64,000 nt of DNA from Kudoa neothunni (GCA_964304625.1 OZ199840.1:3361631-3425630), one strand, 5' to 3'; positions 1 through 54,100 are shown, numbered from the stretch's first letter. A program made the numbers and translations. The notes: a model not told the origin generated them from the sequence alone.

Positions 1-2378
1 CTTTTGATCATCTTCTTTGCGCAACTTTAGTAAGTAAATTTGTTAGGACAGAATTTGTTATTTGTTCAATGATGTTGACGTGTATAGTTTTTGTACCATT
101 TTTTGTATCATAATTTCACCAACTTTCTCGATATTTCTGTACTGTTCTTTGCTCCAAAAATGTTCAGCGCTATTTGTTTTTCTTCTATAGCAGGAAATAT
201 GATTTTAGCTGTCAATTTTTCAGTTATGGACGTTCTATCGCCACCAATATCGAGAAAAGCGCTTCCTTTTAGGCTGATACCAGTATTCTATCTCTCATGG
301 TAAATCTTGCAATTGCTGGTAAGATTCGTCCCTTTTGTTAAGAAGCGTTATCGCTGGTATAGATGGATATTTTGATTCACAAAGACTTGAATGATGCACT
401 CGAACGTTTTTGCTTTAATAACATGATTTGTTTCTTATGCAATTCCTAAATGAGTGACTGGCTCTTAAGCAGTCAAAGCACTAGTCATTAATTTCTTTTG
501 TTTGCTGTCGTACGTTTGGTACATTCGCCCGACCAGTGGTCTTCATTATAAAATGTATGTTTTCTTTCGTTATGGATAATCTGAAATTAAAAAAGGAACT
601 TGCTGATTATCAGAGACACTTGAAAATTTGCTACTACATAACTCAGCTGTTTCTTTAGCGTATAATACGATGTTAATCTCCGTCCGCAAGTTATTCAAAG
701 TTAAGTCCTTATTGTAATATTTTGAAATGATGGAAGAATATAATTCTATTGGCAATTTGCTTTAATCAAGGAAAAAAGTGTTGAGAATCTACAATCTCAC
801 CGAATGATTCCAATGATCTGATATTCGTGTCAATCTGATTTATGTTAGCTCTTAACGAATTAATATTGTTTATTCGCAAATAATGTGAGTGTTTGACGTC
901 CACAATGTTTTCATATCTTATCGTAAATAGCTCAATCGCCTTTCGTATTTATTAATTATAACTGGAAGTCCTTCCGTACATTTTGAAGCATCTTCATGTA
1001 AGAGTCCTTTCAAGTACCACAATTTGGATATTGTACTATTCCTTGTATTGAGAGGGAGGTTGGAGTGGAATAAATCTCAAAATTCCATCCATTTATGGAT
1101 GTCTCCATTAAATTTTATTAATCAGATTTTCGGTAATATAACGCCAGAGTAACAATTTTGACTTTCAAAACTACTGTAAATAATTGAATTACCTTGGGAT
1201 ATGAAGGAAGAGTTCATTATTTGTTGATTTTGTTGATTCTTTGTTAACTCGCGCAAGTCGATTTTAAATAATCTGTCATTACAAATTAGTTCCTCCCAAG
1301 TGTTGTTTGTCCAAGATTATATTATCGAATGTTTGAATTATTTGATTAGCATGTTTTCCACATCTTTATAATGATATCGATTTTTCTAGATGTGATGATG
1401 TTTCTTCGATCATGTACACTAGCAATGGGCGCCGAAGAGAATGTCATTTTTAAATTACCGAGCGACAGCGATAGATTGCGTCGCTAACACATTAGATGTT
1501 GTGTTTGTTATTAATACTAATCTGAGGATGGATTAGTAACAGATCATCTCGAGTTGAGCGATTATTATCATTCATTAGCTTTTCATCGTATTCCATCAAA
1601 TTTCTAAGATTTTCGGTTTTTACCGACAGTTTCGTGTTCAGGTAATTCCCCTCTACCACATTCTTCATTAGTTTCTCATCAATTTGACAAATTTGAGTGG
1701 TAGGTGCGATATAGCCATATTTTTCGCTTTGATATTCGCATGGTTCAATGCAGAGAGATGTAGTTATAATAATGATTCGATAATCCATGGGGATTATCTC
1801 GTCGGAAATGTAAATTGAGTTTTCTTTGTTTAGTTCCTCTATTAGTGCAATTTTGAGTTGATTACTAGATTGCTTATACCGTTCTTTACATTCCAACATC
1901 ATTTCATTTGAGGGATTTTGGCGCCACTTCGGTTGATCACCATCCTCATCAACTTCAAAGATGGCTTGACTTTTAGCTGTTCCATATCATCTACAGTCTC
2001 ATCACTCAAGAATAGCAAAGTAACACTGTTGGGTATGTTTCAAAGTACTCATCGATTACTTCCGTGGCTTCTAGAAGGAGATTTTCACGAGATAAAATCT
2101 CGGCAAAAATCTTCATAGAGCGCCTTGAAACAACGAGAGATACTTCCGTACAAAATCAGCAATAGTTTTATCAAAGTAACTCAGTTTAGCACCACATGAT
2201 TTCAATTCTAAATATTTAGAATAACGTACATAAATCATCGGCGAAAGTTCGTGGTCGAAATATCTCAACGTAGAGATGTCACACAAACTCCGCAGTTGAA
2301 GCGTTAGAATGCTCTCATCGTATATTAGACTAGTATAACAACATTTTTTCTTTTTCGCAGCGCAAAAAAGAAAAACGT
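1..2378 (-). mobile_element. Array element C: 5' part of a heavily decayed non-LTR retrotransposon, runs off the left window edge
   Basis: Follows a tRNA-Lys 3' half and the same T5-C-T5/6 leader as A and B. Hand translation gives STLRYFDHEL...YSKYLELKS...ADFVRKYLSLFQ, and ORF 1492-1902 (DYRIIITT, IEPCEYQSEKYGYIA) is homologous to the N-terminus of A/B. Many stops. RT is not within the window. Confidence 0.8.
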
Positions 2379-2413
2379 CGTCCTATATGGGGATCGAACC
2401 CATGACCTCGAGA
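2379..2413 (-). pseudogene. tRNA-Lys 3' half (diverged) at the B/C junction
   Basis: Minus strand TCTCG AGGTC ATGGG TTCGATC CCCAT ATAGGAC G matches the 3' half of the intact tRNA with 3 substitutions; T-arm perfect. Confidence 0.9.
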
Positions 2414-5400
2414 ATATAATATAAAGGGAAAATGGTGGTTAATATCTAATATTATGTTAATGGAATAGGTGGAAATTTGGCAGAAATTGGTTGGTCCTGT
2501 GTGACTTGGTTGATCTAAATATACAATTAACATTTATAAGGTAAAATTACTAGGAAATTGGACGATTCAGCTCCTTTTTCACATTCAACTTTGGGATTGG
2601 TTGGGAGGATGTTTTCTTGGAATTTTTCTCTTTAGACTTTAGTTGCGATGAAGGTGGAGGCACCAGAGTCATCGCTGAGATATCTTTGATAACAATGGGC
2701 TGCATCACGGTTTTCTTTTCAAGAGGTGGATTTCGGAAAATGTCATCAGACTGGGTTAAGAACACTTGAAACGATTGAGGATTTCTTAGGAGAATTGGAG
2801 GTGGGGGGATTTCTATAGTTGGAATGGATTGTTGGATGGTCTGAACTACACTGATGGACTTTGGTGTAGGTATGCGTTTATTAAAGGAGTTCCCCAGAAG
2901 CGTCTTTCTATTTTGGATATAGGCACCATGCTTGACTATTGGATTAGCACTGGTGCAGTACAGGTGGGCTTTCCAATGGTTGAAGAGTCCAGCAAAGCAG
3001 ATCTTGTGATTGCCTTTTTCAAGGTGGGATATCCTCTTTTTATTAAAAATAAAAAGAGCTTTGTAAGCGTCGTTATTTGACTCTAATGAGCCCCCAATGC
3101 GCCGTAAATGAGTGCATGAAGCTGGCAAGAGTAACCTCGATCCATTGTTGCTGTTCCCTTCTGTATTTGATAACCTTATGTCAGAATACCTCTTCGAAAC
3201 GAGAAAGAGAGGACTCAAAAGTTACGGAGACGTCGCAGATGATAACGTTCTTGGTCTGGTCATTGAAAAGGGTTATATCTGGCCGACGATTTGAGGGATC
3301 TGGGGGAATATAATGTCGAGGAATGTAACCCAATTTTTGTTAGGCTTCATCTGTTCAATAATGATCTCAACAATGTGGTTGTCTTGCGGACCTTGCATTT
3401 TCCTCAATCTATAACCACCCAGGATACGTCCCAGGTGTTCCGTTCCCTCATGACAACATCTGCAGTCAGTGCCCGAGCAAAGCTTACGTGTTTGTAACAC
3501 GCACTTTGTAGGGAGCGCGTTCACTCGCACCAGGAGACCAAAGCGATATACATAGGGGGGAAACCGCCTTTGTTGATCCAGGAGTTTGCAATTTTGTTCC
3601 TACAAAACACTCGACGGATCGTCCCTGCGTTCGCTGGGACTTCCACACATCAAGAAACATTGTTTGAACATGCCACGGAATACATCGGAGTCTGGTGGCA
3701 CCTCTGCTTATGGGGTTGGATATGTACTGGCGGATTCAGATAATCGGGGCCAGTGTCAATCTTACTGGGAGACTGATCATCAACCTGCTTGACTTGTAAT
3801 CCAAGAGACTTCGTATTCAAGCGAATGCTAGAGAATATGCTTCTCACGTCTCTGGATTTGATGTATTCATGATCCCGGTTGAAGTATTCTTGTGGGGTGA
3901 GAGACCGTTGTTTCGCTAATCAACGATGGCTGTGATTGCGTCCTCGGATAACTTTGCAACTCGTTCATCCACAGAATGGATGAGATTAAGCGCAGAAGAT
4001 AATCTTAGGGCACAAAATAAAACTTGAGGCACCGAAAACCTAGTCCTCCTATAGCACAGGTGTACAATAGGGACTTTGTAATAGATTCAGGCAGAGCCAG
4101 ACATGGCGTATTGATTCCCGAATCTCAGAATCGACTCATCAAGTCTTCGATGTGGATGATATTATTCTTCATTGAGTATTCGAGGGTAGGTAGCTATTAT
4201 GCTTTAGTGAGTTGATCTTCATAAAATGGAGGAGTCGTGAATTGGAGACTTTATGTAGGTTTTCACTAAACTTTGAGAAACAAGATGGCAAGTCTCTGAA
4301 AGACAGAAGATTCTTATTTGTACCGAGGTACTTATAAAGTCCTCCATCTGCGGAATGGGCACACCTTGGAAAATGTATGATTGGATGGTATCTGTATTGA
4401 CAATGCGTTTTTTCTTCGAAAATGTTACGTTGAGCCCAGCGCTTTTCGAATGATTAACGCGTAAACCAAGATTGTTAACAAACTGCTCGGATTAAAAAAG
4501 GAGGGCACTCATTTGGATATGGTTATGGGACAACAACACAATGTCGTTAGCATAAAGCTAACGCATCAAAAACCTGCCATGGAGTTTATATCCCTGGTTG
4601 GTGGTATCAATTCGACGGAGAAACGGATCAATGACGAGGGTTAAATAACAAAGGAGACAACGGGCAACCCTGTCGCACACCTTTACCATAAGGATAAAGG
4701 CCAGGCCGCCATTCTTGTCGGTAACTTCGTTTAACAACAGTTCGCATACATGTGTTACATGAGATTGGTTATTTGTTTAGGGACATGATTTTTGTTAAGT
4801 TGGTTAACAAGTTCTTGGCGGGGGAACGTATCGAACGCCTTTCTAGGTCTATCCAGACAGCCGATAGAGGGTTCATATTTCGGCGTACATCGTCCCAAAT
4901 TTCTTGGAGAACGGATGCGTGTTCAACGCATCCGTTTCCACCAACAAAACCTGTCTGAGAGGGGCTCAATTCAACAAGACGTGCAAGCTTTTGGTTGTTC
5001 ACACTCATGAACATTCGGGAGATTCTTTGCATGTAGAAATGGGTCTATATGCGGAGGGATCAGACAAGATAGTGTTGGTATCGCGCGAGAATAGAAACCC
5101 AATATATTAAATAAAAGTATAATTAGGATAGAAGAGGTAGTAGTGACCGTATTCGTAAAATAGTAATTATTCCGGTCGTACTAAAGTGAATAACGAGAAC
5201 TACTAATTAATGTTAATGGGAATCAATACGCCCAGCTGATTGGGTATGATAATGTATGTCCTTCCTAATAGTGTCCTTTGGGATCATAACAGATAGGGTC
5301 GTCGGACTTTGGAAGGAGTATAAGACGGCTAACAAGCCAGTCATCAGGGACTACCTCAGAATTGAGGATCTTGTTAGAGAGCTTGGCCAAATATGAATTC

Positions 5401-7481
5401 ATAGAGGGCACTTTCTTCCAGAAGACCATATGAATTCCATCTTTACCGGGTGCTGTATCTTTCTTAGCATGAAATAAAGCAGCACTGACCTCTTCATCAG
5501 CGATATAAAAATCGCTGAATCGGTTTCCAGTCTGATAGAGGGCTTCGGCGGAAAACGGTACCGGTTCTTTCTCGCTTAAATCAACTTGGGAAGGATTCTT
5601 CTCAGGTGATTTTGGAGAATTATTTGGCTCAATGTTAGGATCAGGATCGGAAAAGGACAAAAGAAGGAATTTTGTAACGCGGGATAGATGGTGAAAGAGG
5701 CTCACGAAATATGCGATCCTCAGAAGCAGCCTTTTCAGATGCTTCCTCGTTGTATTCAACTTGTTCATGAGCAGGGCAGAGGGATGTGACGGATCACTAT
5801 GGTCCAACGCTGGAATTCTAATTGGTGATTTTTCATCGGCATTAGGGCCACAGAGAATAGTCTGTACATCTCTCGAGGTGATAAAGGAAAGAGAATCGAT
5901 TATCTCGTCCGCAGTTGCTTCGCACCACTTTGGCTTGGCCTTAGTGATTTCACGGAAGCAACGCCTCTGGTTACATCGATAACTGACAGGCAGGCGTTTT
6001 ACCTCATCTTTAGATTTGGAAGTCGGGTCTTTTTCTTTTTCACTATTGCCTTTAGAGTCTTCTTTAATGGATTCCGGAATGGCAGATTTTTCAGGCGGAT
6101 CTTGGGTTGGAGTTGGAGTCGGAGTACATGGTTGTGGAATATTCTTTGAGGCTTCGTCAACAACAGATTTAACGGGCTCCGGAACTTTCGGATGGTACAC
6201 AATCTTCAATTCCATCACACCGCTACATGCCGTTGTTATGAAGTACATGTATAAATCGTTGATTGGGGGGTTGATGTGAGTCGTTAAGATAGCATGCAAC
6301 TCATTAGAAACTTGTTCCAATGTTTCAGCATGATTCTTTCGAAACTCGGCTGCTCTCTTCTGGAATCTATCATGACGCTCACGGGTCTCTTCTTCCTGCA
6401 AAACTTCTTTGGAATCGAAGACGTTTCGTTGGCTTTGGCGGCCTCACGTTTTGGCTTTTAAATAAGGAGGGGCTGGAACAACGATAGGACGAAAATCGGA
6501 ATATTCAGTATCTTTTTCCAATGCATTGAGATCTAACGGCTCCTCTAGATATGATGGTTCAATGGGATCAGCAGTATCGTATGTTTTGGAGGATTTTTTA
6601 CGACAATCACGCAAATAATTATCGAAAGAAGCGAGAGAATGTTGTCTATTACTGGGTTTTAAAATAGATTGGGCAAAAATTGATTCATTTGGTGTGAACA
6701 GCAATGATGGCGATAGTTCATCAGATTGAATAGTGGATTGAGTTATCCCGCCAATATGGACAGAGGATAATGGTAATGTTGAATTTTTGTCTAATTTCTT
6801 ATCGTTTTCACAAATATGAGATGTAAGGGCGATATATCTGTATTTTCCGCTTTGATATTCAAAAGGTTCAATGTAGAAAGCTGTCGTTATCATAACTCTG
6901 TAATCTTTAGGGATTAACTCTTCTGGGACCAATTTCTCATCCAAATGTTCAATTATGGCATCTTTTAGCTCAGCAATTGACTTATTGTAACGTGCTTTAC
7001 GATCCAATACCATTTTCTTCAATTTTAGACCACTTCGGTTCATCACCATCCACATCAACTGCAAAGATGGTCTAATTTTTGTCTTGTTCAACTTCAATCG
7101 AATCGCCAACAGAGCATGGAGTAGTCAAAGTAGGTGGGTTTCTATCGTAGTACTCAGAAATAAATTCGTTGAGGTTTTTGTGGGAATCATCAGCTGATAT
7201 CATATCAGTAAAGAGTGGAAAAGTAATCTGAAACAACGATAGGTGCTTCCTCACGAAATCAGCGACACATTTAGCAATCCTAAGCAGCTTAATATTGTAG
7301 GATTTTAATTCCAAATATTCAGAATATAGATGCAAAATGAGTCGGCCAAGATCGTGGTCAAAATTTTCTAGCGTAGAGAGCTCGCAGTTCAATTTTAAAC
7401 ATACCGTTAAGATCAGTGGGTCATATGCTTTTAAAATATGTGTGAAATTTTTTCTCATCGCTGCGCGAAAAAGAAAAACGT
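2414..7481 (-). mobile_element. Array element B: decayed RLE non-LTR retrotransposon (possibly a composite of two elements)
   Basis: N-terminal domain as in A; -1 domain (RLPVSYRCNQRRCFREI); domain 0 (TAPGKDGI); RT motifs QTGF..GCVEH, AVWIDL, GVRQGCPLSPLLFN; degenerate CCHC (CRCCHEGTEHLGRILGGY); RLE RPDI..DVSVTFE..KVIKY..IYGALG. Bounded by tRNA halves. Confidence 0.9.
2550..3530 (-). pseudogene. Zinc knuckle + RLE endonuclease + Pro/Lys-rich tail of element B (frameshifted)
   Basis: ORFs 3273-3530 and 2550-3218 plus hand translation around 3090-3290 (NRRPDITLFNDQTKNVIICDVSVTFES; HALIYGALGA). Confidence 0.85.
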
Positions 7482-7520
7482 TGCCCGATATGGGGATCGA
7501 ACCCATGACCCCGAGATTAA
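6829..7520. repeat. ~692-bp direct repeat, copy 1 (other copy 13616-14308)
   Basis: By eye 3 substitutions and 2 small indels versus 13616-14308; near-identity stops abruptly at both ends. Confidence 0.95.
7482..7520 (-). pseudogene. tRNA-Lys 3' half (39 nt from anticodon-loop TTAA to discriminator) at the A/B junction
   Basis: TTAA TCTCG GGGTC ATGGG TTCGATC CCCAT ATCGGGC A is identical to 14270-14308 except the discriminator base; the 5' half is replaced by the element A 3' UTR. Confidence 0.95.
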
Positions 7521-10500
7521 TACAATATATAGGTCATAGACCGAAGAAAAACGAGTTTTTATCTATAATAATAACTAAATAATGTTTGTGGAAAGTTTAG
7601 GTGGATTTGGGTGGATATTGATAGAGGTGGGTAGAGATGGGTTGAAATCATCATTTGAGGGGGTTATCGTCAAATAGGGGCTTATCATCAAAAGAAAAGA
7701 TTAATGGGGAACCACCGCATGCTGTACATGGTTATTCCAGACTAATCTGGAATTGTCCAGCACAGAATGGGTGATATCCTTCATTAACCTTCTCTGTTCC
7801 TTCTTTGCAGTGAGGAATAGGAAGCGACTCATCGTTGACGGGGTGTTAGGATGGTGAGAGCCAAGCGCGCCAAAGACAAGGGCAGATCGTAGCATACCAA
7901 ATCCTCTTTCTTCCAAAAGTCGACATTCCTCAGCATATTTCTCCGATTTGTATCCCAAAACCTGATCCAAGCGAGCCATACCATTCTCATAACTGATGGC
8001 AACTTCTATTACTTTGGCCAGGTTTTGCTTTGTATTCAATAGGGACAATATCGGGTTTTTTGTTTCGGTTGATTGTGGGGAAGTGTTGATTGATTCGAAG
8101 CTCCCAGTACTCATTCTTTTTAAGTTTGAGCTTCTTTTCAATGGATGTAGCAATTAGTTTGACCACATCGTCATGGCGTTTTGTTCTTAATAGTTCACAC
8201 CCTTCCGACAACCACCTAAAACATGACCTAAAGTTTCCACTTCACAGGTGCAGTGTCGACATTTGGTATCAGCAGCCAATTTGGTGCGGAAGAGGACAGA
8301 CTTTGTGGAAAGGAGATTGAGACGTCCCATAATTCCGAAGCGATGAGTGTTTGTTCTCATGTTACAAGTCTTTATCCACTTGTTGCAAAGCGGACTCCAG
8401 CTGAAACAATCAACCAAACGACCTTGATCTACTTGATTCCTCCATTTTTGATAAAATGTTTCTTGGATGTGCCAACGCAAGAGCTTTGTACGGGTAGATG
8501 TTAGTCTTGCTCGGGTAGTCTCCAAGATGTGTGAGGGTTTGAGTAGAGAGGTGAGATCTAAATCAATGGATGGGAAAACATTTGAATTACTCGGGTTGAG
8601 GTCTTTAAGATGCGCACCAAGAATCTTCCTATGAAGACGCAAGGAGGACATCAGTGAACGGATGTCATGGTGTTTGAAATGTTCAAATTCAGAATTTAAG
8701 TAATCCAATGTTGAAAGTTGATTTTTGGTTCGAAGTTGGATTGTTTCACTTAATGATTCTCTAGCAACTTGGCGCATTGTATCATCAACAGAATGGAGGA
8801 GATTTAAACCAGCAACCAAACGCAGAGCAGCGTAATCCAACCGAAGGTTACGAATTCCAAGTCCACCAAGTGTAGAAACTGTGTGAAGGAAACTGGGTGG
8901 AAGCTGAGTTGGGTAGTTGTAACCACTTTCGTACAGTGTTTGCTATGTGACGATCGAGGTAAGTTAGTTGTTCAGCTCGTAAACAATGTGATTTGGTGAA
9001 AAATTCAAGGGTTGGCTGAAGATATTGTTTGTAAAGTTCAATTTTCATAAATGGCAGCAAGGGAGATTCACTCAAGCGGTTAAGTTTTATCTTAAATTCA
9101 TCAAAAGGAGGTGGTAAATCTTTGAATGTTTCAAGGTTGGAATTTGTTCCCAGGTATTTGTAAAATTTGTTGAGATTGGGAATAGTTTGATAATTCAGTT
9201 TGATAGGAAATTGGGATGAATGATTGATAAAACGCTTCTTATTCTTGTGAGTGACAACTAATCTAGCACATATGTCAATATTGAATTGGATGTTGAGTGG
9301 TTGGAATAAACTCTCACATTTTCTGAGAATGGAGGTCATTTTACATTGATTATTAGTTATTAAAACAATATCATCAGCAAAAGCTTGTACATTTACTTCA
9401 GAACCACGAAGACTATAGCCTGGACATTCGTCAATAATTTGATCTAATAGTCTATCGATTGACATGTTGAAAATTAAGGGTGAGATTGGACAACCTTGTC
9501 TCACACCTACACCATTCATTGGAGCTTTGAGAGAATTACCACAGCTATCAGAGACAACATTGTAGCTTTTCTCATAGAGATTGGAAATAAAATTTTGTAA
9601 ATTTTCAGGAAAACCAAACTCCGGCAACACTTTCTTTATATGGTCATGCGGAATACTGTCAAAAGCTTTCTGAATATCCAGCCAAACGATACAACAGTCT
9701 CGTCGCTTCCTTTTAACAGAATCCACAATTTCCTGGAGGGTAAAAGTGTGCTCGGTACATCCATCACATGCTGCGAATCCTTTTTGTGCTTTGGAGAGTT
9801 CAATAAGCGGTCTAATCTTGCCATGAATGGTAGACATAAACAAACGGTAAATTGTTTGTGTGATGCTTATTGGACGATATTCTTTTGGGTTATTTGTATT
9901 AGGATTGTTGGATTTTGGGATGAGGACGAAATAATTTTGTTGAAAATGACATTCAAAAAGTATACAGCATGAGGAAGTGATTTCCAGAATTTGATATTGA
10001 TACCATCGGTACCAGCAGATGTATCAGTCCTCGCTTTGTCCAATGCAACAAGAATTTCTTCTTGGTTGACCCCAAACACTTCACTATCATTGTCATCTCT
10101 TCCCTCATAGTATGGATAGCCTTTATTGTCTGTTTTAAAAATGGGACTAGATTGTCCATCAGAATTTTGATTGATTGATTGTTGAGAATTAGTATCATTT
10201 TGCGAAATTATGTTTGGATTTAATTTGGATTTTGGTTGAATTGTAGGTTGGTTATCATTGATTACAATAGTTTTTGTGTTGGATGAGGATGGAGCAGAAG
10301 ACTTGTGGAATAGGTCACTAATAATGTTGGTAGCCGTCGATGTACACCACTTCGGAGCAGGTTCAGCCACTTCTCTAAAACATCTCTTTGGATTTGTGCG
10401 GTAGAGTCCTCTCAAACGTTTTATTTGATCTGGAGAGAGTGAAGTTTGAGAATTCTCTACGTTTACGTTGGAATTTGATTTATCAGCAGCTTGTGAATTT

Positions 10501-13500
10501 TGTAAATTACAATCTGATGATTTTTGACTTGAATTTTGATTTTTCATATGTTTAGATGATTTAGGTGGCTCTTTTGGCTTGAATAATGGTACATAGTAAT
10601 AGCCCAACTGTTTTGGCATGCTTTTTAGATATATCAATGAATTTTTTGTATAATGTTTTAATGTCCAACTGATTATTTTGGTTAACAAGTTGTGTGAGTT
10701 CGTCCGATGCAAGCTTAAGCTTGTCTGCTCGTTCTTCTTTACGTTTACGTTGTTTTTCAGCATACGTAAGGTTTCCTTCATTATTATCAGCAGAATGCTT
10801 CTGTGAATTAACATAATTTTGATTTAGGTTCGTTGGAATAGTTGGAATATTAGACTGGGATTTAATTGGAGGTTTATTGATTAATTTGGTTGGAACTGTT
10901 GTTTTTGGATTATTTTAGGTTTCAACATGGGAATATTGCTTGTTTAATATTTGATACAACCGAAGTGCCTATTGATTTGATATTTATATTGATATGTTTA
11001 GGATTTTTGTTAATTTTGTCAGCTAGGGTTTGCAATTCAAGGTCAGGACTTACCACCTTTGGAAAGTGCTTTTTAGATGGCGCTGGTTGTTGCGATGATT
11101 GCGATGTTGGATTTGAGATTGAAATTGGTTTTGATTGGATATGCGCCTCACCACTACTTTTAATTATGATTGGATTAATTGGAATATTTGTAGATTTTTT
11201 AGGTTGATTAGAATTAATAGTTGGCGGCTTATTTGTGTTTTTATTGCGTGGTTTGTTAGTATTAGATTGATTCTTCGAGATAGAAATAAGTCGATTAACT
11301 TCCTGAGAAATTGTAGTAGTTTTATTTGATTTGGAATTATTCGGTGTTTGGAAATCTTCAATAATCAGCGAGTTATCCTCCATAGCCGAGTAGTAGAGGG
11401 TGTCCTCTTGATTATTGTGAGCATTGTATGTTGGAGTTTTTTCAGGAGGTTCATAATATATTATTCCAAATGATGAGTTTGATATATTTTCTTGCGAATC
11501 AGGTTCTTGCTCAATTAGTTCTTGTTTGATGTATAAGCAATCACCTCCAGATTGTGGCGGTGGTTTAACATCCGTAATTATCACATCATCGTCAATCTCT
11601 TGATTGGTATTAGAATTGTTAATAGGATCTTCCAAAATAGCCATATTCAAATTGTCCGATTGGTCCATAAGTGCTTTAAGATCATTCCGGTAAATTTGGT
11701 GCTCCATATCCAGTGCAAGCATTTTTTGCGATTTCCACAATACAGCGTCATTCGACGCAAATGTTACTTCTTGAATATTGATTTCTTCCGGATCAGGGGG
11801 TGCAATTTCATTGTTGTTATTTGAATTATTTTCCCTCACTATTTGTTCCAACTCTAGGCGATCTCTTTCGAAATCCGCCCACCATCTAGCCTCCTTTGCG
11901 TTTTGTAAGCGGAAATTCGTATTGTTGATATTTACGTTGTTAAATTTAATCAACTCATTTTGATTATTAATGTTAATATTGATATTGATATTGTTAACAT
12001 TATTAATATTGTTGACATTGTTGGATTGCAAATTATATTGAATAGTTGTCGGAGAGTTAGAATTTATGGATGCGCATGGTGTAGAGTTGAAATGTGAAAA
12101 TTGGATATTGTTAGAATTAGAATTGGTGCATGTCGGTGTTACGTCTTTTTTATATTTTTCTAATGCACCAATAGGTCTCAGATTAGTTCTATTAGTACCA
12201 ACATCAGCAGCAGAATTATGGTTGTTATTATCACTAATATTTCCAACTAATGTCGGTTTATTATTATCAATTAATCGTTGATGTCGTTGTTGATTTTGTG
12301 GATTAACAACCTTTGGAATGTTCAATTGGTTATGATCAACGATGGCGTTCGAATTAGTCGTACGACTACTTAAAATATTCGTCGCATATCGTCGTAGGTT
12401 GTTGAAAAAAGAAATATCATTATTTTGTTGGTTTTCAGAGTTGTTATTAACATTATTATTATTATTATTAATGTTAGGTTGAATTGTTGATAATGTTTCA
12501 ACGACTGAATTATCCATAAGCAAATTGTCGTTGGGAACAAATTGCAAAGTAAACTCATTAGCATCAATAAAAGTGGATTTTCCAGTATTTAAATTCGTTG
12601 TTACATCAACATTTGGGTCGTTGTAGTAAAAGATTGCAATATTCTTATCAGCTGCGACGGAAGTGTTACATCACTGTCAGTTGAATTTTCATATTTAACA
12701 ATAATATTATCATTTGCGGCGTTAGATTGGACATTTGAATTATTTGAATCATTTTCATCATCAATTTGAATAGTTTCATCAACATTTGGCGCATTATTTG
12801 AAGAATCATAACAATATTGAGAATTAATCTTATCAGTTGCAACAATGGTAACATCATTCGGAATTTCATTTGAAATTTCATTTAAAGTAGAATCATCATC
12901 ATTTATAACTGTAACATTGCCAAAATTACCATCAAAAGTATCAACCTGATTAGTATTAATGACATTAGTATCATCAATATTGATGTCATTATTTGATAAA
13001 GTAACATTGCCATTATAAACTAGCGATTTTTCCATACAAAAAGTCAGCTCATTTACATCATTAAACGCACTATTTAGCAATCCGCTGCTAGATGAATTAC
13101 CTGAATAGTAGCGGTAATCTGGCGATTGTTGTTCGGGGATTTCACTATCAATATCAAGTAGTAAATTTTGTTCAGTCAAATTCAAGTGTTCATAAAGAAT
13201 ATCTTCAATAGAGGTTGAATCCATGGGTTCGATGTTAACATTTTCATCTTCAATTGGTAAAGATAAGTCGTTATCTCTAATCACCTCTGTATTGTTCAAA
13301 ATATATTGGGAATTTTCGCATGTACGAGCATTCAAAGAATATGAAAAGTTTGGTTGGTCATCATGTTCATCCATAACATTTTCCGGTGATTCTATTACAT
13401 TGTTTGTTGCTTGATCATCATTATTACACACTTTAGAGATAGAAGGAGGATCAGCGGTAACATCATAAAGCGGCGGTGACGGAGATGGAATAGAATGAAC

Positions 13501-14269
13501 AGTGGATTTTATGGATTGAAAAGCCCCGCCAGAGTAGGCGGGAGATAACGGTAATGTTGAATTTTTCAAATTTTCATCAAATTTCTCACCAATTTGTTCA
13601 CTTTGAGCTGTAGATGCGATATATCTGTATTTTCCGCTTTGATATTCAAAAGGTTCAATGTAGAAAGCTGTCGTTATCATAACTCTGTAATCTTTAGGGA
13701 TTAACTCTTCTGGGACCAATTTCTCATCCAAATGTTCAATTATGGCATCTTTTAGCTCAGCAATTGACTTATTGTAACGTGCTTTACGATCCAATACCAT
13801 TTTCTTCAATTTTAGACCACTTCGGTTCATCACCATCCACATCAACTGCAAAGATGGTCTAATTTTTATGTCTTGTTCAACTTCAATCGAATCGCCAACA
13901 GAGCATGGAGTAGTCAAAGTAGGTGGGTTTCTATCGTAGTACTCAGAAATAAATTCTTTGAGGTTTTGTGGGAATCATCAGCTGATATCATATCAGTAAA
14001 GAGTGGAAAAGTAATCTGAAACAACGATAGGTGCTTCCTCACGAAATCAGCGACACATTTAGCAATCCTAAGCAGCTTAATATTGTAGGATTTCAATTCC
14101 AAATATTCAGAATATAGATGCAAAATGAGTCGGCCAAGATCGTGGTCAAAATTTTCTAGCGTAGAGAGCTCGCAGTTCAATTTTAAACATACCGTTAAGA
14201 TCAGTGGGTCATATGCTTTTAAAATATGTGTGAAATTTTTTCTCATCGCTGCGCGAAAAAGAAAAACGT
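7521..14269 (-). mobile_element. Array element A: ~6.75-kb full-length RLE non-LTR retrotransposon (NeSL/Utopia-like) associated with tRNA-Lys
   Basis: Domain order: unrecognised N-terminal domain, long Asn-rich linker, -1 domain (QIKRLRGLYRTNPKRCFREV), domain 0 (SAGTDGI), RT (QKGF..GCTEH, WLDIQKAFDSIPH, GVRQGCPISPLIFN, AFADDIVL, YKYLG), CCHC (CRHCTCEVETLGHVLGGC), RHDDV, KPDIV, IEVAISYE, KSEKY, VFGALG. 180-bp 3' UTR without poly(A). Confidence 0.95.
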
Positions 14270-14294
14270 CGCCCGATATGGGGATCGAACCCAT
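7701..14294 (-). pseudogene. Element A polyprotein (RT + CCHC + RLE), broken into about 8 ORF pieces by frameshifts
   Basis: Adjacent or overlapping minus-strand ORFs 13914-14294, 12601-13917, 10922-12547, 9867-10814, 8848-9843, 8187-8840, 7987-8211, 7701-8153 in the expected domain order. Confidence 0.9.
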
Positions 14295-14308
14295 GACCCC
14301 GAGATTAA
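13616..14308. repeat. ~693-bp direct repeat, copy 2 (other copy 6829-7520)
   Basis: Near-identical to 6829-7520. Confidence 0.95.
14256..14266 (-). terminator. RNA polymerase III terminator TTTTTCTTTTT
   Basis: Starts 4 nt after the tRNA discriminator; same motif after the half-tRNAs at ~7468-7478 and ~2364-2375. Confidence 0.8.
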
Positions 14309-14343
14309 GAGTCTCGTGCTCTACCTTTCTGAGCTAACCGGGC
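14270..14343 (-). tRNA. tRNA-Lys (anticodon CTT), 74 nt, intact
   Basis: GCCCGGT TA GCTC AGAAAGGTA GAGC A CGAGA CTCTTAA TCTCG GGGTC ATGGG TTCGATC CCCAT ATCGGGC G folds into a full cloverleaf and closely resembles eukaryotic tRNA-Lys(CTT). Confidence 0.97.
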
Positions 14344-29538: not shown

Positions 29539-31488
29539 CCTTCGAATACCTGGAAAAAAAGTTACGCGAATGCCTGAAGAGGACCGCTGTGGTCCTATGC
29601 AATTTAATCGTCGCATAATTATATTTGAAACTATATGACTATAAAGATAAATAAAACAACAGAACAGAACAGCTTGGTTTTAAGTTAAAAAGAGGAGAAA
29701 AAATTTAATTTAATATTTTTCAACATCAAACTGAATTACATGCCCGATCTATCTATACCATCTCATTATAATGACATTAATTCTAATCGTTTTGTCTAAA
29801 ATCTAAATAGGTAAATTACACAAATATGATATATTTTGTAGATATAATCAAATTTAATAAAAAAATTCAAGTGCGTATAAAAATATGGCGAAATAAAGTA
29901 GATAAATAACACAATATATTTTATTTTTTGTTACACAAATCGCATTCTATATTTTCAATTCGGTGATTTTCGCAGACAAATTTGTTGCAATTTGAGAAAA
30001 TATGGCATGTACCTCTTCCAGAAGGAGGTTTCTTCCTTTTTATTGGGATGATTTCAAAATCGATATCATCGTTTCCTAGCAATTCTTCCGTTAACATTTT
30101 TAAAAACTCTCTTCGGGATTGTTTTTATGAGCATTTTTGAATTTCGGGTTTCGATAAACATACAGGAGATATGCATTATAGGCGGATATATCGATGATGT
30201 TAAAGAAAATCGCCATCGGCCAACGACGAATGGCTCTTTTGGTGGAATAATTTATGATCTCTGTTTTTTTCGACTCAGGATCAATATTACAATCTCGATG
30301 TGTGGAGCTTAAAAGTACCACAGATCTATTTTTCTTGGAATTGTATTTTACCAATGTAAATTTATCCTGAAATAAAAATCTCACATCGTTTGGTATTCCA
30401 TTTGATAATTGAAATTCAGGGATGAGAAATTTTTTATTTTTACGGACAGTCCTTACAATTGTTGTTTTATGAGACATTAAGTATCTCGCAACTGACAATA
30501 TGGTAAAAAAATTGTCCGTGGTAACATTACGACCTTTTTTTTAATAAGGTGTAACTAAATCCTTTACCACATGTTCACCTTGGTTGGTTTCAACAACACC
30601 GTTCTCTTTTCCAATATATATCTTTGCATTGCATAGATATGCGTTTGTTGCATCACACAACGCCCATATTTTTATCCCATACTTTCCAGGCTTAGAAGGA
30701 ATGAACATTTTGAAGGGGCAACGACCTGTAAATGTGACAAGCTGTTCATCCACAGTCAATTGGGAAGATGGGTTGTAACTTTCTTTACACGTCTTTATAA
30801 ACTCATCAAATATATATCTGATGGAGGAAGTTTATCCTCTCTATCCCTGTTTCTTCTCTTGTCGAATCTGAGACAACTTGAAAAATCTTCAAAGCGATTT
30901 CTTGTAATTTTTGCCTTTCATTACTCCAATTAATAAGATAGCTCCCAACAAAACTTTCAACTCGGCCATATTTATCTTTTTGACATTGGGTTTTTCTTGT
31001 TTAGTAAATTCGTTGGAACAATATTGGATCTCTCCCAACATTTTATTGGTCGAAAAATTATTAAAAGCCCTCATGGAGTTTAGCCATTCTGGAATGCTTT
31101 TTTTGTAAATGTCACTTTTACATTATAAATATTTTCCGCTGTAGGCCTCCTTTCAACTTTAGTTAGGGGTTATACCATTCTTCTCTATCTTTGTAGACAA
31201 TAAAAGCGACATGGGTCATATCTTCAGTACTTTCGTAATCGTTTTAAAAATAATATTATCTTCGTCAGAATACATTTTTAAGCAAATTTCTTGTTGAGCG
31301 CGCAAGCTTGTTATAAAATAAAATAAATTCAATTAAAATTTTTGATTTAACATATAACAAGTCATAAATTTCTTATGAAATATAATAATAAATTTAGAAT
31401 GATGTAATTATAGTTAAAAATATTAAATTCGTTAACAATTACACGTGGACCGAAATGGTCCATCTCAGGCATTCGCGTAACTTTTTTT
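29539..31488 (-). mobile_element. piggyBac transposon, decayed
   Basis: Fragments TVDEQLVTFTGRCPFKMFIPSKPGKYGIKIW and RRWPMAIFFNIID; TTAA-CCTTCGAATACCTGG end; subterminal inverted repeat AAAAAAAGTTACGCGAATGCCTGA at ~29554 and ~31465-31488. Outermost right end not seen. Confidence 0.88.
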
Positions 31489-47329: not shown

Positions 47330-49319
47330 TGCAATGTTCTTCGCCACCCGTAAAGAAACACTTTTGACAATATATACAGTCGTGCCTCGGTATTGCGTAG
47401 AAACCCCATATCTCTTGTATTTGCTCTAGTTTAGTTAAATTGGGAAATATATTAGATATATTAATGCTAATATTATAAAATTATCGTAAAGAAAAATTGT
47501 TTTAAATAAACGACAACGTATATTATTCGATAGTGCGCAGTAAATTTGACAATGTCGAGAGTGCAGCGAGATATTGATGAGAAGAATAAAATTATTAGTT
47601 ACTATAATTCAATTAAATCAATTAAAAGTGCAAAAAATGACCGTAATGAAATTCGGACTAAGTATTCAAATGTTTTTACTTTATATTAATAATAACGATA
47701 ATTTTTGTTAAGAATATTCAACTCTCATTAGAATTCTCGCAACGGAACAAAAAATTACTGATTCCAATATTTCTAACAAGAGAAAGCGATTTTCTAGTGG
47801 TAAACATGAAGATGTCGATACCGAAGTTTATAATTGGATCGTAAATGCCCGAAATAATAAAAAACAAATTTCTGGCGAAATTATAATAGCAAAAGCATTG
47901 TCAATCGTCAAAGAAAAGAATATCGACAATTTTAATGCAAGTAGAGGATGGCTGGCTTGCTTTAAAAATAGATTTAGACTTCGTTCCGTAAGACTTCACA
48001 GGGAAGCATCTAGTGCTGATTCTTCTTCAATATATGCTTGGAAATTTGAGAATAAATATATTCTGCAGAGTTACGATCCGAAAAATATTAATGTTGATGA
48101 GACTGCGCTTTTTTACCAACAAATTAATAAGCGAATTTACGTATTAAAAGCAGAACAAGATGTCCGAGGATCTAAAGTGTCCAAGAAGCGTGTTACGGTT
48201 TTAGTATCTGCAGCCTTAGATGGTTCAAAATTACCATTATTTGCAATTGGTAAATATCAGAAGCCTCGTTGTTTTAAAAATATATCCCATCTACCAACTG
48301 AATATTTTTCACAGAAAAACTCATGGATGAACGCCTCTATCTTTTTTCAAATTATGAAAAAATTTAACAATATGTTTGAAAAAGAGAATAGAAAAGTTTT
48401 AATCTTATTAGACCAATGCCCCTCCCACCCTAAAGACATGAACGGACGGTCTAGAAAATATTAAATTTTTATTTTTGCCGAAGAATACTACATCAATATT
48501 ACAGCCTTGCGATTTAGGAATAATTAACTCATTAAAAAGCAACTATAAAAAAATTCTCCAGTCGATTAGTGTATTGGATGATAATGAATTAATATTAAAA
48601 AACTATACGTTATTCGATTGTTTAAAAACGTTAAAAAATGCTTGGAATAATGTTTCGAAGGAAACAATTATTAATTGTTTTAAAAAGTCAGGTGTTTTTG
48701 ATTAAAATTATAAATATATGTTTAATAGCATCAACAACTATTCATGAAATTCAAGAATATGATAGCATTAATGAAGGTATTTTATCAAAAATTATTTCTC
48801 TAAAATTGACTAGACTCATTTGATGATGTATAATCTTCTGAAATTAACGAAAAGGATGAAACAGACAAAGCCATAAAAAAGGTCCCTACAAAGAAAATTA
48901 GGGATGCAATACAAACTTTAAGGGAAACTTTTATCGCGGAAGAACCAGAAGGTTTATTCGACCTACACGCTGTAATGGACCGACTGATCTCAATACTAAA
49001 AAAAAGAGAACTCCAAACTACCATAACGGACTTTTTTCACAAAAAATAAAAAGAAACCTCATTTAACAATTAACTTATATTTTCATTTCTCGATTCTATG
49101 CCTAAAAAATAGGTTAAATCATAAAAATACAATTTCCCTCAATGTGCACGCGCCAGCATCGATATTGCGTACTAATTTTGTATTGCGTAGTAAAATTGAA
49201 TCCCCGATTTACTTCGCAATATCGAGGTTTGACTGTAATCATCAGGCGTCGTGCCCAAAATACACTGAATAATATTCAATGGTTTATTAATCTTTATATT
49301 ATAATTGCAATCTACAACA
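47330..49319. mobile_element. ~129-bp solo-LTR-like insert (TG...CA, 5-bp TSD ATTTC), split by the pogo element
   Basis: ATTTC at 47325-47329 and 49320-49324; removing the insert restores the IS630 frame ...YLNGRN|DLLGRMTNACNSI...; AATAAA on the minus strand. Confidence 0.75.
47377..49235 (+). mobile_element. pogo/Tigger-family transposon (CENP-B HTH + DDE_1), decayed
   Basis: TIRs CAGTCGTGCCTCGGTATTGCG / CGCAATATCGAGGTTTGACTG, TA TSD; FNASRGWLACFKNRF, NVDETALFY, LILLDQCPSH, PKNTTSILQPCDLGII. Confidence 0.93.
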
Positions 49320-51190
49320 ATTTCTTCCATTCAAGTACCCATGACGTCTAATGGGTGACCTTATCAATGAAAATACCTCCTCACATGGGTTCGAAAATAG
49401 TGAGAACGTGGGTAAATAATCAACTTCAGGAGCATAATTATCATGGAATTCTTGATTCGCGTGATGAAATCTCACGTTATCCATATCCATTGCGATAACA
49501 AATCATTGTGTCCAACAATTTCTTCAATTTTTTTCAAAAACGTTTGAAAATTTGCCTCACAATGAACGATTCCTTTGACACAAACGGCAAAGATCAGAGT
49601 TATATTCTTTCCTCGAATATTTCGAACAACAGAATTCGGAGTGACATCTCTTAACGCACGGCCATGAGTTCGCAGCATATGTAAGTTGAATGAACTTTCA
49701 TCCACAAAAATTAATTTTTCATGCCTGACGTGAATTGGAAGATTTCCATACCATTCTACGCATTCTTTTCTTTGAAGTATGGTTCTGTCAGAATTTCGGC
49801 TTAATGGAACACTTCTCGTCATCCTAAAAGTGAGATTCAATGACTTTAGCCATCTCCACACGGTTGTTTCAGACACTCTCAGATCTAATTTCTCTGTCAC
49901 CATAGAAATAGAAATTGTGCAGTCGTCATTCAAAACGACACGTCTCGCTCCTCCTCCTCTTTTCAGTTTGATTATGGTATTATCGGATTCATTATATTTT
50001 ATTACAATATTGCTAACAGTTGAAGTGCTCAGTTTAAAAAATTCTGCCATTTCAACTTGCGACTTGCCTTGTCGTTGACAAGACAACAAATTTTCTTTCT
50101 ATCATCGCCGGTAATTTTACTGTATTTGACCGTCTTTTAATGCAAAATTAACTTGATAATTTAAATCTAATCTCAATCTCGTCAAAATGTAAATTGCAGA
50201 ATCCCAATTTTATTGTTGACGCATCCCAACTTGGATGTAAAACCCTGTATCACTTGATTTTATTTTTTCTTGCGCGAAATACAGTAATCGATTGGTCGTA
50301 CATAACCCCCTTAAGGATTGAGGAATTGTATGTACTTTTTGCGCAAGCGCACCAAAATATTTAAATACAGAACCAGCTATAACATAAATATTAATAAAAA
50401 GACAATTATTTTTTTTATTTAAAATTACGATTTAAAAATGAATAAATATCTGGAATAGAATCAGACATTAACTCCCACTTTTTTGAGCCATGATGTTTAA
50501 AATATTTGCCAAGCCTTTCAAAATAAAGTAAGGCCACATCTGAAAGGCTCAATTTTTGATCGATAAAATCATCATCCGTTTCTGAGTTAACGGGGAAGGA
50601 CCATCATTGCGCCATTGTTATTTCTGTGGATTAGAGTGGACATCATTATAAACCACACTATTATGTATATACAACATGTTTCTATATTTATCCTTCATTT
50701 CTCAACAAGCTACCACATTGATGTAACTATAAAAACTTACTAAATGTTTAATCGTGGTAAAAAAAGAAAGGAACGTTGCTATAAGCTGGGATTATAATTG
50801 ATTGTGCGCGCGTTCCACGGACACTTGTATTGTTCTCACATGGTGTCTTTCTTGCGTGATCTTAGAATATAGCAAACGTTTAATTTAATCGCGCAGTCAA
50901 AGCAAGAAGCTACGTACGACCGATCCTCACGTGACTTATTTTTCGTACTAGGTATGTTTATAAATTATTCTAAGCGAGTAATAATAATATGAATCATTTT
51001 TGAAATCATTTGAATACGAGAAAACATTTTAATCTGTAAAATAACTAATGTACGTACGAACGGTCAATTATTGTAGCCCGAAGCAATCAAGATCTCATCC
51101 ATCGGATTAAAAGGAATTATCCTTTATATATATAAAAGAGGACTGTCGGTACGTTTGTTTGTTTGTTTGTGTGTGTCAGTGTGTGTATGC

Positions 51191-54100
51191 CAGGCACGTG
51201 CCATGGGTAATTGCTCGGGGTAGGCAGCCGCTGCCTTGGTACAAGAAAATTGCAACTATTTATATCTGTATATAGGAAACTAAAAAATATCGAAACTATA
51301 AATAATTTTTTAAGGAAATTAGTTTGGATTTAATATTTAAGAAATATTGTTCAATAAATTTTTTAATAACTTTTTACCGGGAATTGTAATTCTTAGGTTG
51401 AATTTGTAGACTAAAGATAAAACATTAAAAGTATATATAGAATTTTTCAGGATTTTGAAATGTTTACTTGAGTAAATTAATGCATATGCGTGAGAACGCA
51501 ATTAGTTTGAATTCTAACGATTTATTTGGAATATGGACGTCTCTTTATCAAATTAAATAGGCTACAATAACAATCGAACGATATATTTTTATATTTTAAC
51601 GATTGATATATCAAGAAATTAATAATACTTCATTCTTAATAATTATTATGGAGATCATATCTAGTTAACGCTATAAAACATTCTTTATTTAAATTTGCAA
51701 CCCTGTCCTATGATACGTAAACATCTAAATTAGCTAATAAAGAGATTCTTTTACAATATTTTAGAGTCCAAACCAACAATGTTTCGATAGGACAAAATAA
51801 AGCGGATAAATTATTGATATATGTTAAAATTATAAAAATATTTGAAAGTTGGGTCTTGTTCCATCCTGTTAAGTCTTTCTTTTTCAGTCGATATTAATGC
51901 AAGGGAAGAAAGCCGTTGGTTTGCCATCCTGTTTCTTGTGTAGCTTTTAATTCGTTTCGATGCAGAAAACGACCTTTCTACAGAAATGGTTGTTGCAGGA
52001 ATCGTTAAAATTAATTGTAACAATTTGACAACTTCAGGAAATGTTTGGTCCAGCTGATTTTGGAAGATAAAATCGAGCCATTTTGCAGGGGACTTTTCAA
52101 TGAATACATGTGTATTATAAATTCCTGCCAAATCAGCTTTCAGTCTTAAAATGTCAAAAAATTTTCCATAGTTCCTTTGCAGGCTTTCAAGGGCGCTCGT
52201 ATCAACTTGACATGATAAATTGTCAAAGTTATTTACATTAATCAATGAAATAAATTTGAGATTTTCGACATCATTAAATCTCGTTCTCAGATTCTTTACT
52301 ATATCACTGACTATTGTATCAAATAATCTCGCTCTTTCATTTTTTATGTCACATTGAGGGCGAAGGATGGATCTAATTAAGTTGTATTCTTGGCAATATT
52401 TTTCGAACTTATAATACAATAATTCAAATTTTGTGTGCATATCCTCAAGTTTTGTTATTGTAACATTGATCCTTTCAATACAATACGCAATGTCTATCAT
52501 TTTCGTCTGCAATATATTGAAGAGCGCGTCAGTTAACACGAAAATTTCATTGTATATCATCAGTAAAAAGTATGTTGAGTCGTTTTTTAGCCAATTGTAA
52601 AGTCCATTACTTCGAAGTAAAGTGTCTGAATCCCATAATGAGGGATTGCTGTTCATATTGTAGAAAAGTTTGCAAAGATCACCGTGATACTCTAATATCA
52701 TCTGCACCAACTTTGAATTTGAATTCCATCTCGTTGCCGCTGCTGTTGGAATGCGTCTCCGCACAATTTCATCAAGAAATTGGACCCGTTTAGTTGATTT
52801 TTTGAAAAAGGAGGAAAGTGCTTCATTGGTCTTGAAAAAACTCGTACAATCAGGGATAAATTTGGCCGATTGTGACAACACAAGATTTAACTTATGGGCG
52901 TAACAGTGAGTAAACAGCGCGGTCGATATCTTTTGTCTAACTTTCGACTGAACTCCATTTAAATGGGAGGTCACAACTATCGCTCCATCATACGTTTGTG
53001 CGATTAATTTCTCTTCAATGTTGTATTTATATATGTTTTTAAATACATATTCCATTACACCATCCGCTGTTCTGTAACGTAGAATATCAAATCCAATGAA
53101 AACATCCTTAATTTTTGATCCCAATACGTATCTCAATATTGTCGAACATTGAGATGTGCATGAGATATCGGTCGTCTCATCCACTTCTATCGCAACGAAC
53201 GGAGCCTGTGCTAATCCCTCTTTAATATTATTCTCCAAAACCATCTTTATAGCCTCAATCAGATCATTTTGAATCCTGTTGGAAATACCAGAAAAGACTG
53301 ATGAATTCTGTAAGTGACAAGATAATTTTTCGTCGAATTTTGCGGTAAAACTCAACAACTCCAAATAATTACCACGATTTAAAGACAGTTTGTGTTCATG
53401 ATCACCGCGAAAAGCAAGTTCTTGTTTAATCAAAAAGCAAACTGCACGGATCAATGTTTTCAATATCTCTCTGTTATCCTTAACATTTTTATTGTGAAGT
53501 TCAATCGAAATATTTTTCTGTTGATCAATGAGACAATCTACTCGTACAGATCCAAATGTTTTCCATGAAACTTGACTTTGATAGTGTGTTGCGGATCACT
53601 CATGTTTATTTAAAGCGATTGGCAAATTATTCAAGTCGAAATATCCTTTGACCCACACACTTTCACTAGTCACTGAAAAAAGCAAACATGGGAAGCAAAA
53701 AAGCCTTATTGTTGTAGCACACCCACATAACCACTCTTTTTTCTCATACCATGAAGTATTAAACGTCCTGATAATTGTCTTATCTTTCAGTTGTTTAAGT
53801 TCTTTAAGATCAGGTGTCGGTCTACCATTACTTATAATTTGTAATTTATCTTCATAAGGAAGTTTTGAAAACTCTTTAAGATATCCGATGTCCATATTTG
53901 AAGAGATTAAGTAAGATTAACAGAGGCGCGGGCTCTTCTTACAAGTAGGACAATAATTAGTATTAACTTTGGGCGATATATCCCAGTATAGTTGTCATAT
54001 AGATTATCGTATTTTAAAAATTACCTTTAATTAAAATTAAGAAAAAATTGAAGAAACAAAACAATTTATTTGAATTAATAATGCACGCGCAACTGGAATA

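Follow-up and report, generated by a model that had tools for sequence, protein, structure and literature searches.

A head-to-tail array of putative R2-group retrotransposons in the anticodon loop of a tRNA-Lys(CTT) gene of Kudoa neothunni

We analysed a 64,000-nucleotide stretch of the Kudoa neothunni genome (GCA_964304625.1 OZ199840.1:3361631-3425630; hereafter the window), whose first 14,343 positions carry an array of retrotransposon-like units headed by an intact tRNA-Lys(CTT) gene. The minus-strand order is tRNA-Lys(CTT), unit A, unit B and the start of unit C, as an earlier sequence-only reading of this DNA had proposed and as ARAGORN, Rfam (65 bits for the tRNA) and the positions of the tRNA 3' halves bear out (Table 1). 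The head gene is the sole tRNA that ARAGORN and Rfam found in the array region. Every unit opens with the tRNA from about nt 38 onward, followed by two T-runs. The 5' half of the tRNA occurs once in the array and the 3' halves alone recur, a recurrence that was seen in 0 of 100 shuffles. Unit C, present as its 5' part, ends at a 200-N assembly gap at the left edge of the window. A near-identical copy of the A-B-C block lies left of this gap, and in that copy no reverse transcriptase (RT) follows unit C within 18 kb.

The junctions place the insertion point within the anticodon loop, with a tRNA 3' half at the 5' side of each unit and an intact tRNA at the head, in agreement with what had been proposed from the sequence. 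The tail of element A, ..TATATTGTA, is joined to TTAATCTCGG at the tRNA loop, and that of element B, ..TATATTATA, is joined to TTCTCGAGG at the same site with 1-3 nt lost or changed, so that both 3' ends lie where they had been read. Both internal half-tRNAs are directly preceded by an AT-rich tail. The unit borders are ambiguous by up to 4 nt, as the TTAA at the junction fits the element tail and the tRNA loop alike. Units A and B have about 790 nt in common at their 5' ends (6734-7519 versus 13512-14307), over which identity falls from 100% to 75%. Self-comparison revealed no terminal repeats in the elements besides the half-tRNA.

By their predicted domains, units A and B are R2-group retrotransposons without long terminal repeats (non-LTR elements) bearing a restriction-like endonuclease (RLE). 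Unit A consists of a chain of overlapping open frames that together make one long open reading frame (ORF), interrupted by about six frameshifts in this version of the assembly. It encodes, from 5' to 3', an N-terminal segment, an N/Q-rich low-complexity stretch, the RT, a CCHC motif and the RLE region. The assignment to RLE non-LTR elements had been made from the sequence alone; it is upheld by a match to RVT_1 (E 9e-26), an R2-type CCHC motif, a PD..ExK-like region and the similarity of a relative to R2 structures (E 1e-61). This relative (L015) has an uninterrupted ORF of 1860 aa with the same domain order and with the motifs C-x2-C-x12-H-x4-C and RPD..IEVS..K, and its RT matches the solved R2 proteins R2Tg and R2Bm with E values from 1e-61 to 1e-45. 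The RT of element A is 54% identical to an intact copy linked to tRNA-Thr(TGT), and its RLE region is 55% identical to copies in the tRNA-Lys(TTT) array; the position of the catalytic Asp in the PD motif reads Ile in this version. Weak zf-RVT matches were seen in relatives. RVT_1 was the only Pfam domain assigned in the elements, with no recombinase and no transposase, and the N-terminal part of about 1000 aa in three full ORFs contained no protease domain in Pfam searches and, even at E 1, no zinc finger or Myb domain. The RT of unit B (3922-5029) is decayed, with several stops, and represents a lineage distinct from A; by its sequence, unit B is of the older lineage. In element A, the N-terminal domain and the RT are separated by low-complexity coding sequence rich in N, Q and S (about 1 kb; 10922-13917, minus strand). 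The corresponding stretch of unit B is much shorter, and its length varies widely between lineages, whose ORFs span 1600-2240 aa.

The start codon of element A is likely the ATG at 14246, 24 nt past the tRNA end. Across lineages the ORFs start 24-170 nt past the tRNA end, and 53-170 nt past it in lineages other than Lys. An in-frame ATG in the T stem of the tRNA (14246-14294, minus strand) was considered as an alternative start and rejected, since it was found only in two Lys lineages and is probably a coincidence. The conserved N-terminal domain was modelled on the copy of the Trp-CCA lineage, folded with a 12-lineage alignment. The model shows a long antiparallel helical hairpin and a short beta hairpin, with a predicted local distance difference test score (pLDDT) above 90 over about 90 residues. 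Searches of the Protein Data Bank returned no match to this fold below E 0.37, and generic long helical hairpins only. A profile of the domain searched against 1.84 billion representative proteins found one known protein from another sample and one 150-aa fragment. The domain is a candidate for a new nucleic-acid recognition module.

Table 1. Features of the tRNA-Lys(CTT) array. Positions are those of the window unless a contig is named; nt, tRNA nucleotide number.
Feature	Position	Strand	Basis or remark
Intact tRNA-Lys(CTT), array head	14270-14343	minus	ARAGORN; Rfam RF00005, 65 bits
Anticodon of tRNA-Lys(CTT)	14307-14309	minus	nt 37 = 14306; nt 38 = 14305
Trailer after tRNA	14226-14269	minus	two T5 runs at 14256-14266, Pol III (RNA polymerase III) terminator-like
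Unit A	7518-14305	minus	6788 bp; tRNA 3' half, trailer and element A; repeat spacing 6788
Conserved N-terminal domain, element A	13914-14246	minus	translation; homologous N-termini in 11 other lineages
RT domain, element A	8848-9843	minus	Pfam RVT_1, E 8.6e-26
CCHC zinc-knuckle motif, C-x2-C-x12-H-x4-C, element A	8208-8261	minus	translation of 8187-8840
RLE region, element A	7701-8153	minus	by-eye comparison with intact copy, RPD..IEVS..K
3' terminus, element A	7518-7542	minus	4-bp stem-loop GGTC tat GACC, then tail with invariant TTGTAT
tRNA 3' half, copy 2, opens unit B	7482-7517	minus	nt 38 to end; 1 mismatch, last base G->A
Unit B	2414-7517	minus	5103 bp; tRNA 3' half, trailer and element B
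tRNA 3' half, copy 3, diverged, opens unit C	about 2379-2413	minus	sequence comparison
Unit C, 5' part only	1-2413	minus	half-tRNA, hairpin trailer and N-terminal domain remnant
Trailer hairpins, window	14226-14269; 2336-2378	minus	fold
Trailer hairpin, relative L023	3284-3330	plus	fold
Trailer hairpin, relative L013	2700-2751	minus	fold

To place the array in its genomic context, we searched the assembly (40.3 Mb, in three chromosome-size contigs and an 18-kb contig) with the RT of element A. About 50 six-frame matches were found, many of them within open frames of 1600-2243 aa. Fifteen of the 20 RT places inspected have an intact tRNA gene on the same strand 3-4.5 kb upstream of the RT, and each of these is a different tRNA: Lys-TTT, Thr-TGT, Ser-AGA, Gln-TTG, Trp-CCA, Phe-GAA, Cys-GCA, Asn-GTT, two Met-CAT, Ile-AAT, Thr-AGT, Gln-CTG, Val-CAC and Val-AAC. 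The remaining five comprise four places inside those arrays and one without a tRNA. Including Lys-CTT, at least 16 tRNA genes are occupied, each heading its own element or head-to-tail array. The proposed tRNA-Lys target thus stands for the window and is too narrow as a statement of scope, there being at least 16 tRNA-specific lineages in the genome. Where the sequence inspected extends far enough, the element tail is succeeded by a matching half-tRNA (shown by at least 12 lineages), a T-run and usually another, often diverged, unit. Of the 20 places inspected, 19 are tRNA-associated.

DNA queries with tRNA-Lys(CTT), tRNA-Lys(TTT), tRNA-Thr(TGT) and tRNA-Gln(TTG) each returned exactly one full-length match in the genome, and that match was the array head. 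All four tRNAs are the sole full genomic copy. Half-length matches (4, 5, 1 and 7, respectively) all fell within the array of the same tRNA.

The junctions vary around a common point. The element 3' end adjoins tRNA nt 35-40, most often 37/38 (at least 12 lineages). Behind the tail, most lineages keep the tRNA from nt 38 onward, the Gln lineages from nt 35-36, and the Trp and B-type Lys elements from nt 39-40. In an alignment of eight lineages, TTGTAT is invariant a few bases short of the 3' end, and in several lineages a 4-5-bp stem-loop was seen by eye upstream of it, with arms that differ and yet remain complementary. At the 5' side, unlike neighbours have in common only about 19-25 nt past the tRNA end (Lys-TTT, Asn, Val-CAC, and A versus C in Lys-CTT), beyond which the trailer becomes specific to the element type. 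Together with a half of 35-37 nt, this trailer gives a repeated segment of about 55-60 bp. Related neighbours are identical over longer 5' tracts: some 40 nt in Met, some 170 in Ser, some 230 in Thr, and some 790 between A and B of Lys-CTT. In four of five lineages folded, the T-runs of the trailer pair with a downstream A-run as a hairpin, which is absent in Thr-TGT. The hairpin begins at or near the first base past the tRNA, and its arms differ between lineages and stay complementary; z-scores were -2.0 for unit A of Lys-CTT (-9.5 kcal/mol), -3.5 for unit C, -5.8 for Asn and -1.9 for a fourth. Such a fold would be compatible with tRNA 3' processing as the source of the RNA 5' end.

In a tree of RT sequences, with scorpion elements as the only outgroup, the tRNA-linked elements came out as a single group on a long branch. 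The window's unit A clusters with the A-type elements of the Lys-TTT array and with the Thr-TGT and Ser-AGA elements (99/100 support), and its unit B with the B-type copies of the Lys-TTT array (98/94 support). From its head, the Lys-TTT array reads B-type, A-type, A-type, B-type, B-type; RT segments are identical among its three B copies and likewise between its two A copies. Neighbours within one array belong to RT lineages that are only 33-55% identical, in line with the earlier suggestion that diverged families are stacked at one site. To judge from the sequences, the interleaved order is in keeping with repeated head insertion and occasional switching between similar tRNAs, and so is the occurrence of the two lineages at each of the Lys genes. 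The association extends to other public samples. Two contigs from one of them fall within the Gln group: the first (L033) lies beside Gln-CTG and carries a Gln-CTG-like half between two units, and the second lies beside Gln-TTG. Thus, the link between lineage and tRNA predates the split between the samples. In a contig from a third sample (L038), an ORF with the N-terminus of the family, namely the 150-aa fragment mentioned above, lies 58 nt past an intact tRNA-Ser(CGA). Separately, at L035:3540-3600 (other sample) two Gln-group units follow each other with about 45 nt from stop to start and without a tRNA half between them; a deletion, a copy truncated at its 5' end or an assembly error could explain this.

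Taken together, we consider it highly probable that the window holds an array of site-specific R2-group elements that target the 3' side of the anticodon loop of one tRNA, and that the target is rebuilt by duplication. In the mechanism we propose, the endonuclease would nick the antisense strand in the anticodon loop, and reverse transcription would be primed there. The sense strand would remain unbroken across the 3' half and some 20 nt of trailer, and would then prime second-strand synthesis. The outcome would be a target duplication of about 55-60 bp covering the 3' half and the terminator, which would rebuild the tRNA and its terminator upstream of the new copy and leave a dead half downstream. 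As the rebuilt tRNA would again be a target, new copies would stack beside the intact gene, and units further towards the tail would be older and more decayed. Where the complementary DNA (cDNA) is homologous to the 5' end of a resident element, priming could occur there, which would account for the shared first 40-790 nt; later gene conversion is an alternative for the long shared tracts. We favour a staggered-cut origin of the duplication because the closest named relatives, the Utopia elements of a scorpion, show a U2 duplication of about 22 nt.

Further details of this scheme are more tentative, and we regard the following combination as conceivable and rather doubtful as a whole. A single-copy essential tRNA might serve as a self-renewing landing pad, in which the first 20 nt or so of the element mimic the terminator trailer so that the sense strand anneals to the cDNA end, the T-runs allow switching between tRNAs, the RNA 5' end is possibly set by RNase Z acting on a co-transcript, and fidelity is maintained by homology and by lethal selection. 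In R2, an HDV-like (hepatitis delta virus-like) ribozyme sets the RNA 5' end; RNase Z processing may play that role here.

Several observations weigh against the proposal of site-specific insertion with target duplication. The length of the duplication rests on T-rich, low-complexity trailers, and neither an empty allele nor an array end with native flank was found: the 'last' half of the Asn array has another decayed unit behind it, and at the tails of the Ile and Val-CAC arrays no element was seen and the T-rich trailers are too simple to fix the length. Identity between A and B is graded (100, 98, 94, 75%), which fits repeated conversion better than a single event. The frames of elements A and B are broken in both versions of the assembly, and this array may no longer be active. 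On the stretch, 0 reads came from two RNA runs labelled as the same species, which provides no gauge of expression. Fifteen of the 16 occupied tRNAs are among the 38 tRNA genes listed by an Rfam scan, and occupancy was scored for these 15. Finally, one degenerate RT copy (L031, C2:1812300-1822299) has no tRNA or half-tRNA within 10 kb; it is the sole exception among the places inspected.

The same structure could arise if the 3' half were carried on the element RNA. A co-transcript starting in or before the tRNA would yield cDNA that anneals to the upstream half of the target, and the half would be copied from the donor. Co-transcripts of R2 carrying 28S sequence have been proposed to anneal to the upstream half of their target in this way. 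The short distance from the tRNA end to the ORF leaves almost no room for a promoter of the element's own, the trailer hairpin begins at the first base past the tRNA in unit C and in Asn, and the trailer beyond about 20 nt tracks the type of element that follows it, all of which suit a carried half. However, the strong T-runs right after the tRNA should halt Pol III, RNase Z would cut the full tRNA off the RNA, and the closest relative has a plain duplication of about 22 bp. We judge this route rather improbable.

Another possibility is that each tRNA received one ancient insertion and that the arrays grew by unequal crossing-over between the halves or by segmental duplication. The repetition of A-B-C as a block at 99.7% identity is what such growth would produce, as are the identical adjacent units in the Gln-TTG, Trp and Cys arrays. 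Against this, the RTs of array neighbours are too distant from one another to be recent in-place duplicates, and several other arrays contain uninterrupted ORFs of 1600-1900 aa. The interleaved order of the Lys-TTT array and the presence of the same two lineages in both Lys arrays do not, on the sequence evidence, fit unequal crossing-over alone. Such an origin is therefore quite unlikely as a general account.

The state of the assembly bears on whether the array could be an artefact. The 200-N gap (C3:3361431-3361630) adjoins the left edge of the window, and the 13.4 kb on its other side (C3:3348019-3361430) are 99.73% identical to window positions 1-13421. The A-B-C block is therefore present twice in the assembly, with 16 substitutions and 20 homopolymer indels of one or two bases between the copies. 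Contigs assembled from short reads of one sample match the left copy at 11 of 11 indels between 2200 and 8000. It follows that unpolished indel errors are present in the window copy, and frameshifts elsewhere in this assembly may likewise be errors. At four substitution sites both versions are present in the short-read contigs, and in terms of reading frames neither copy of the block is clearly better. Whether the doubling of A-B-C is an assembly or haplotype artefact or a true duplication is about evenly balanced.

The gap between near-identical stretches and the contradicted indels might suggest that the array itself was misassembled, a concern that the sequence-only reading had also raised. 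The short-read contigs argue otherwise at all three junctions. The short-read graph branches at 7520 into the tRNA 5' half or the A tail, and since independent contigs lead into each, the tRNA/A and A/B junctions are both real; a 3585-nt contig spans the B/C junction. The same layout is found at 15 other loci and in three other data sets. We regard an artefactual array as very improbable, and the concern retains its force for the doubling of the block alone.

Integration by a recombinase with an attP-like half-tRNA, or removal of the unit as a giant tRNA intron by the splicing endonuclease, is barely credible: the tRNA rebuilt from an element-side half does resemble attP/attB and the modal junction 37/38 is the canonical tRNA intron position, but the Pfam searches found RVT_1 and no recombinase domain, and the junction varies by lineage over nt 35-40 with losses of 1-3 nt typical of target-primed reverse transcription. 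The range of nt 35-40 was also the ground on which we dropped cleavage of the unit as a giant intron at 37/38.

Elsewhere in the window we noted abundant remnants of DNA transposons at 30100-30498, 47898-50089, 51811-53463 and 61405-61827, of piggyBac-like (DDE_Tnp_1_7) and pogo/Tc1-like (DDE_1 and DDE_3) types and including a 550-aa hAT transposase ORF, and a SMARCC-like exon at 55820-57238 (minus strand). The small contig of the assembly (C4, 18,219 bp, 44% GC) contains fragmentary membrane-protein-like frames under mitochondrial codes and no clean mitochondrial genome.

Site-specific retrotransposons are thought to persist by targeting multicopy genes whose loss is tolerated. The targets tested here are sole tRNA copies, which is the reverse of this strategy, and the host would survive because the element duplicates the second half of the tRNA together with the terminator. 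If the proposed mechanism holds, the arrays represent a natural case of scarless and repeatable insertion into an essential gene. For R2-type insertion tools, this suggests that cut geometry and short homology can preserve a target. The sister lineages on Lys-CTT/Lys-TTT and on Gln-CTG/Gln-TTG provide a system in which target switching can be studied. The predicted N-terminal domain adds a module that is almost absent from 1.84 billion representative proteins.

We found no description in the open-access literature of a family that rebuilds its tRNA or that uses single-copy tRNA genes, and tRNA targets are unmentioned in recent surveys and reviews of R2. The closest named relative is Utopia, of which a protein from Centruroides is 26-29% identical over the region from RT to RLE. 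Utopia likewise has a single ORF with RT, CCHC and RLE, is site-specific for a small RNA gene, and forms head-to-tail arrays in which the units open with target sequence from downstream of the nick. In 23.4 kb of a Centruroides sculpturatus contig (KZ495904.1, L034), the 5' end of U2 (its first 36 nt or so) is followed by five head-to-tail Utopia-like units about 4.4 kb apart, and each of these opens with about 22 nt of U2 from the insertion site onward. Tandem insertion has been published for Utopia, as has a 20-bp duplication for Utopia of reptiles (Kojima and Jurka 2015, PMC4640811). The target of Utopia is the U2 small nuclear RNA (snRNA) gene, whereas the elements described here target tRNA genes. 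The proposed duplication, of about 55-60 bp, restores the complete gene, whereas in the scorpion array only about 60 nt of U2 remain at the head. Compared with Utopia, these elements also have an N-terminus longer by 450-650 aa, with no zinc finger detected, and the targets tested are single-copy.

Families specific for tRNA genes are known among relatives of NeSL, namely NeSL-1_TV (tRNA-Pro), LIN15_SM (tRNA-Arg) and LIN25_SM (tRNA-Glu) (PMC4640811, S6 Fig). In the printed junctions, the tail of LIN15_SM (..TTGTATAATAAT..) resembles the TTGTAT tail found here, and the single 5' junction printed for it is placed some 38 nt downstream of the 3' junction, a spacing that points to a long duplication (PMC4640811). 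LIN15_SM differs in that it inserts at the 5' side of the anticodon stem, with its 5' junction inside the T arm, so that the tRNA is not restored (PMC4640811). It also targets several multicopy isoacceptors, whereas the tRNAs tested here are single-copy. NeSL itself targets the spliced leader and carries an N-terminal Ulp1-like protease; a protease of this type (Peptidase_C48) was not found by Pfam in the elements here, which sit in tRNA genes, and is present in a distant match (P0005).

R2 has the same domain order and RT and inserts by target-primed reverse transcription, at a fixed position within an RNA gene. In contrast to the elements here, it disrupts the gene it enters and depends on hundreds of spare copies, generates little or no duplication, and carries N-terminal zinc fingers and Myb. 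The 28S ribosomal DNA site of the R2 clade is not used here, as all copies inspected but one follow tRNA genes. The RLE elements CRE, SLACS and CZAR make a 49-bp target duplication in the multicopy genes for a small RNA, the spliced leader. A long target duplication in a small RNA gene is common to them and, as proposed, to the elements here; a difference is that the targets of CRE, SLACS and CZAR are multicopy.

Comparable outcomes are reached by unrelated routes. Prokaryotic integrases also leave a functional tRNA by resupplying its 3' part, with a different enzyme and mechanism. Dada DNA transposons target tRNA and snRNA genes, but they encode a DDE transposase, have terminal inverted repeats and make a 6-7-bp duplication, whereas the elements here are RT-based and lack a transposase. 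Dictyostelium TRE and yeast Ty elements, as here, exploit tRNA genes as safe sites for retrotransposons in compact genomes; they land beside the tRNA gene by way of Pol III factors, whereas the elements of Kudoa neothunni land inside it.

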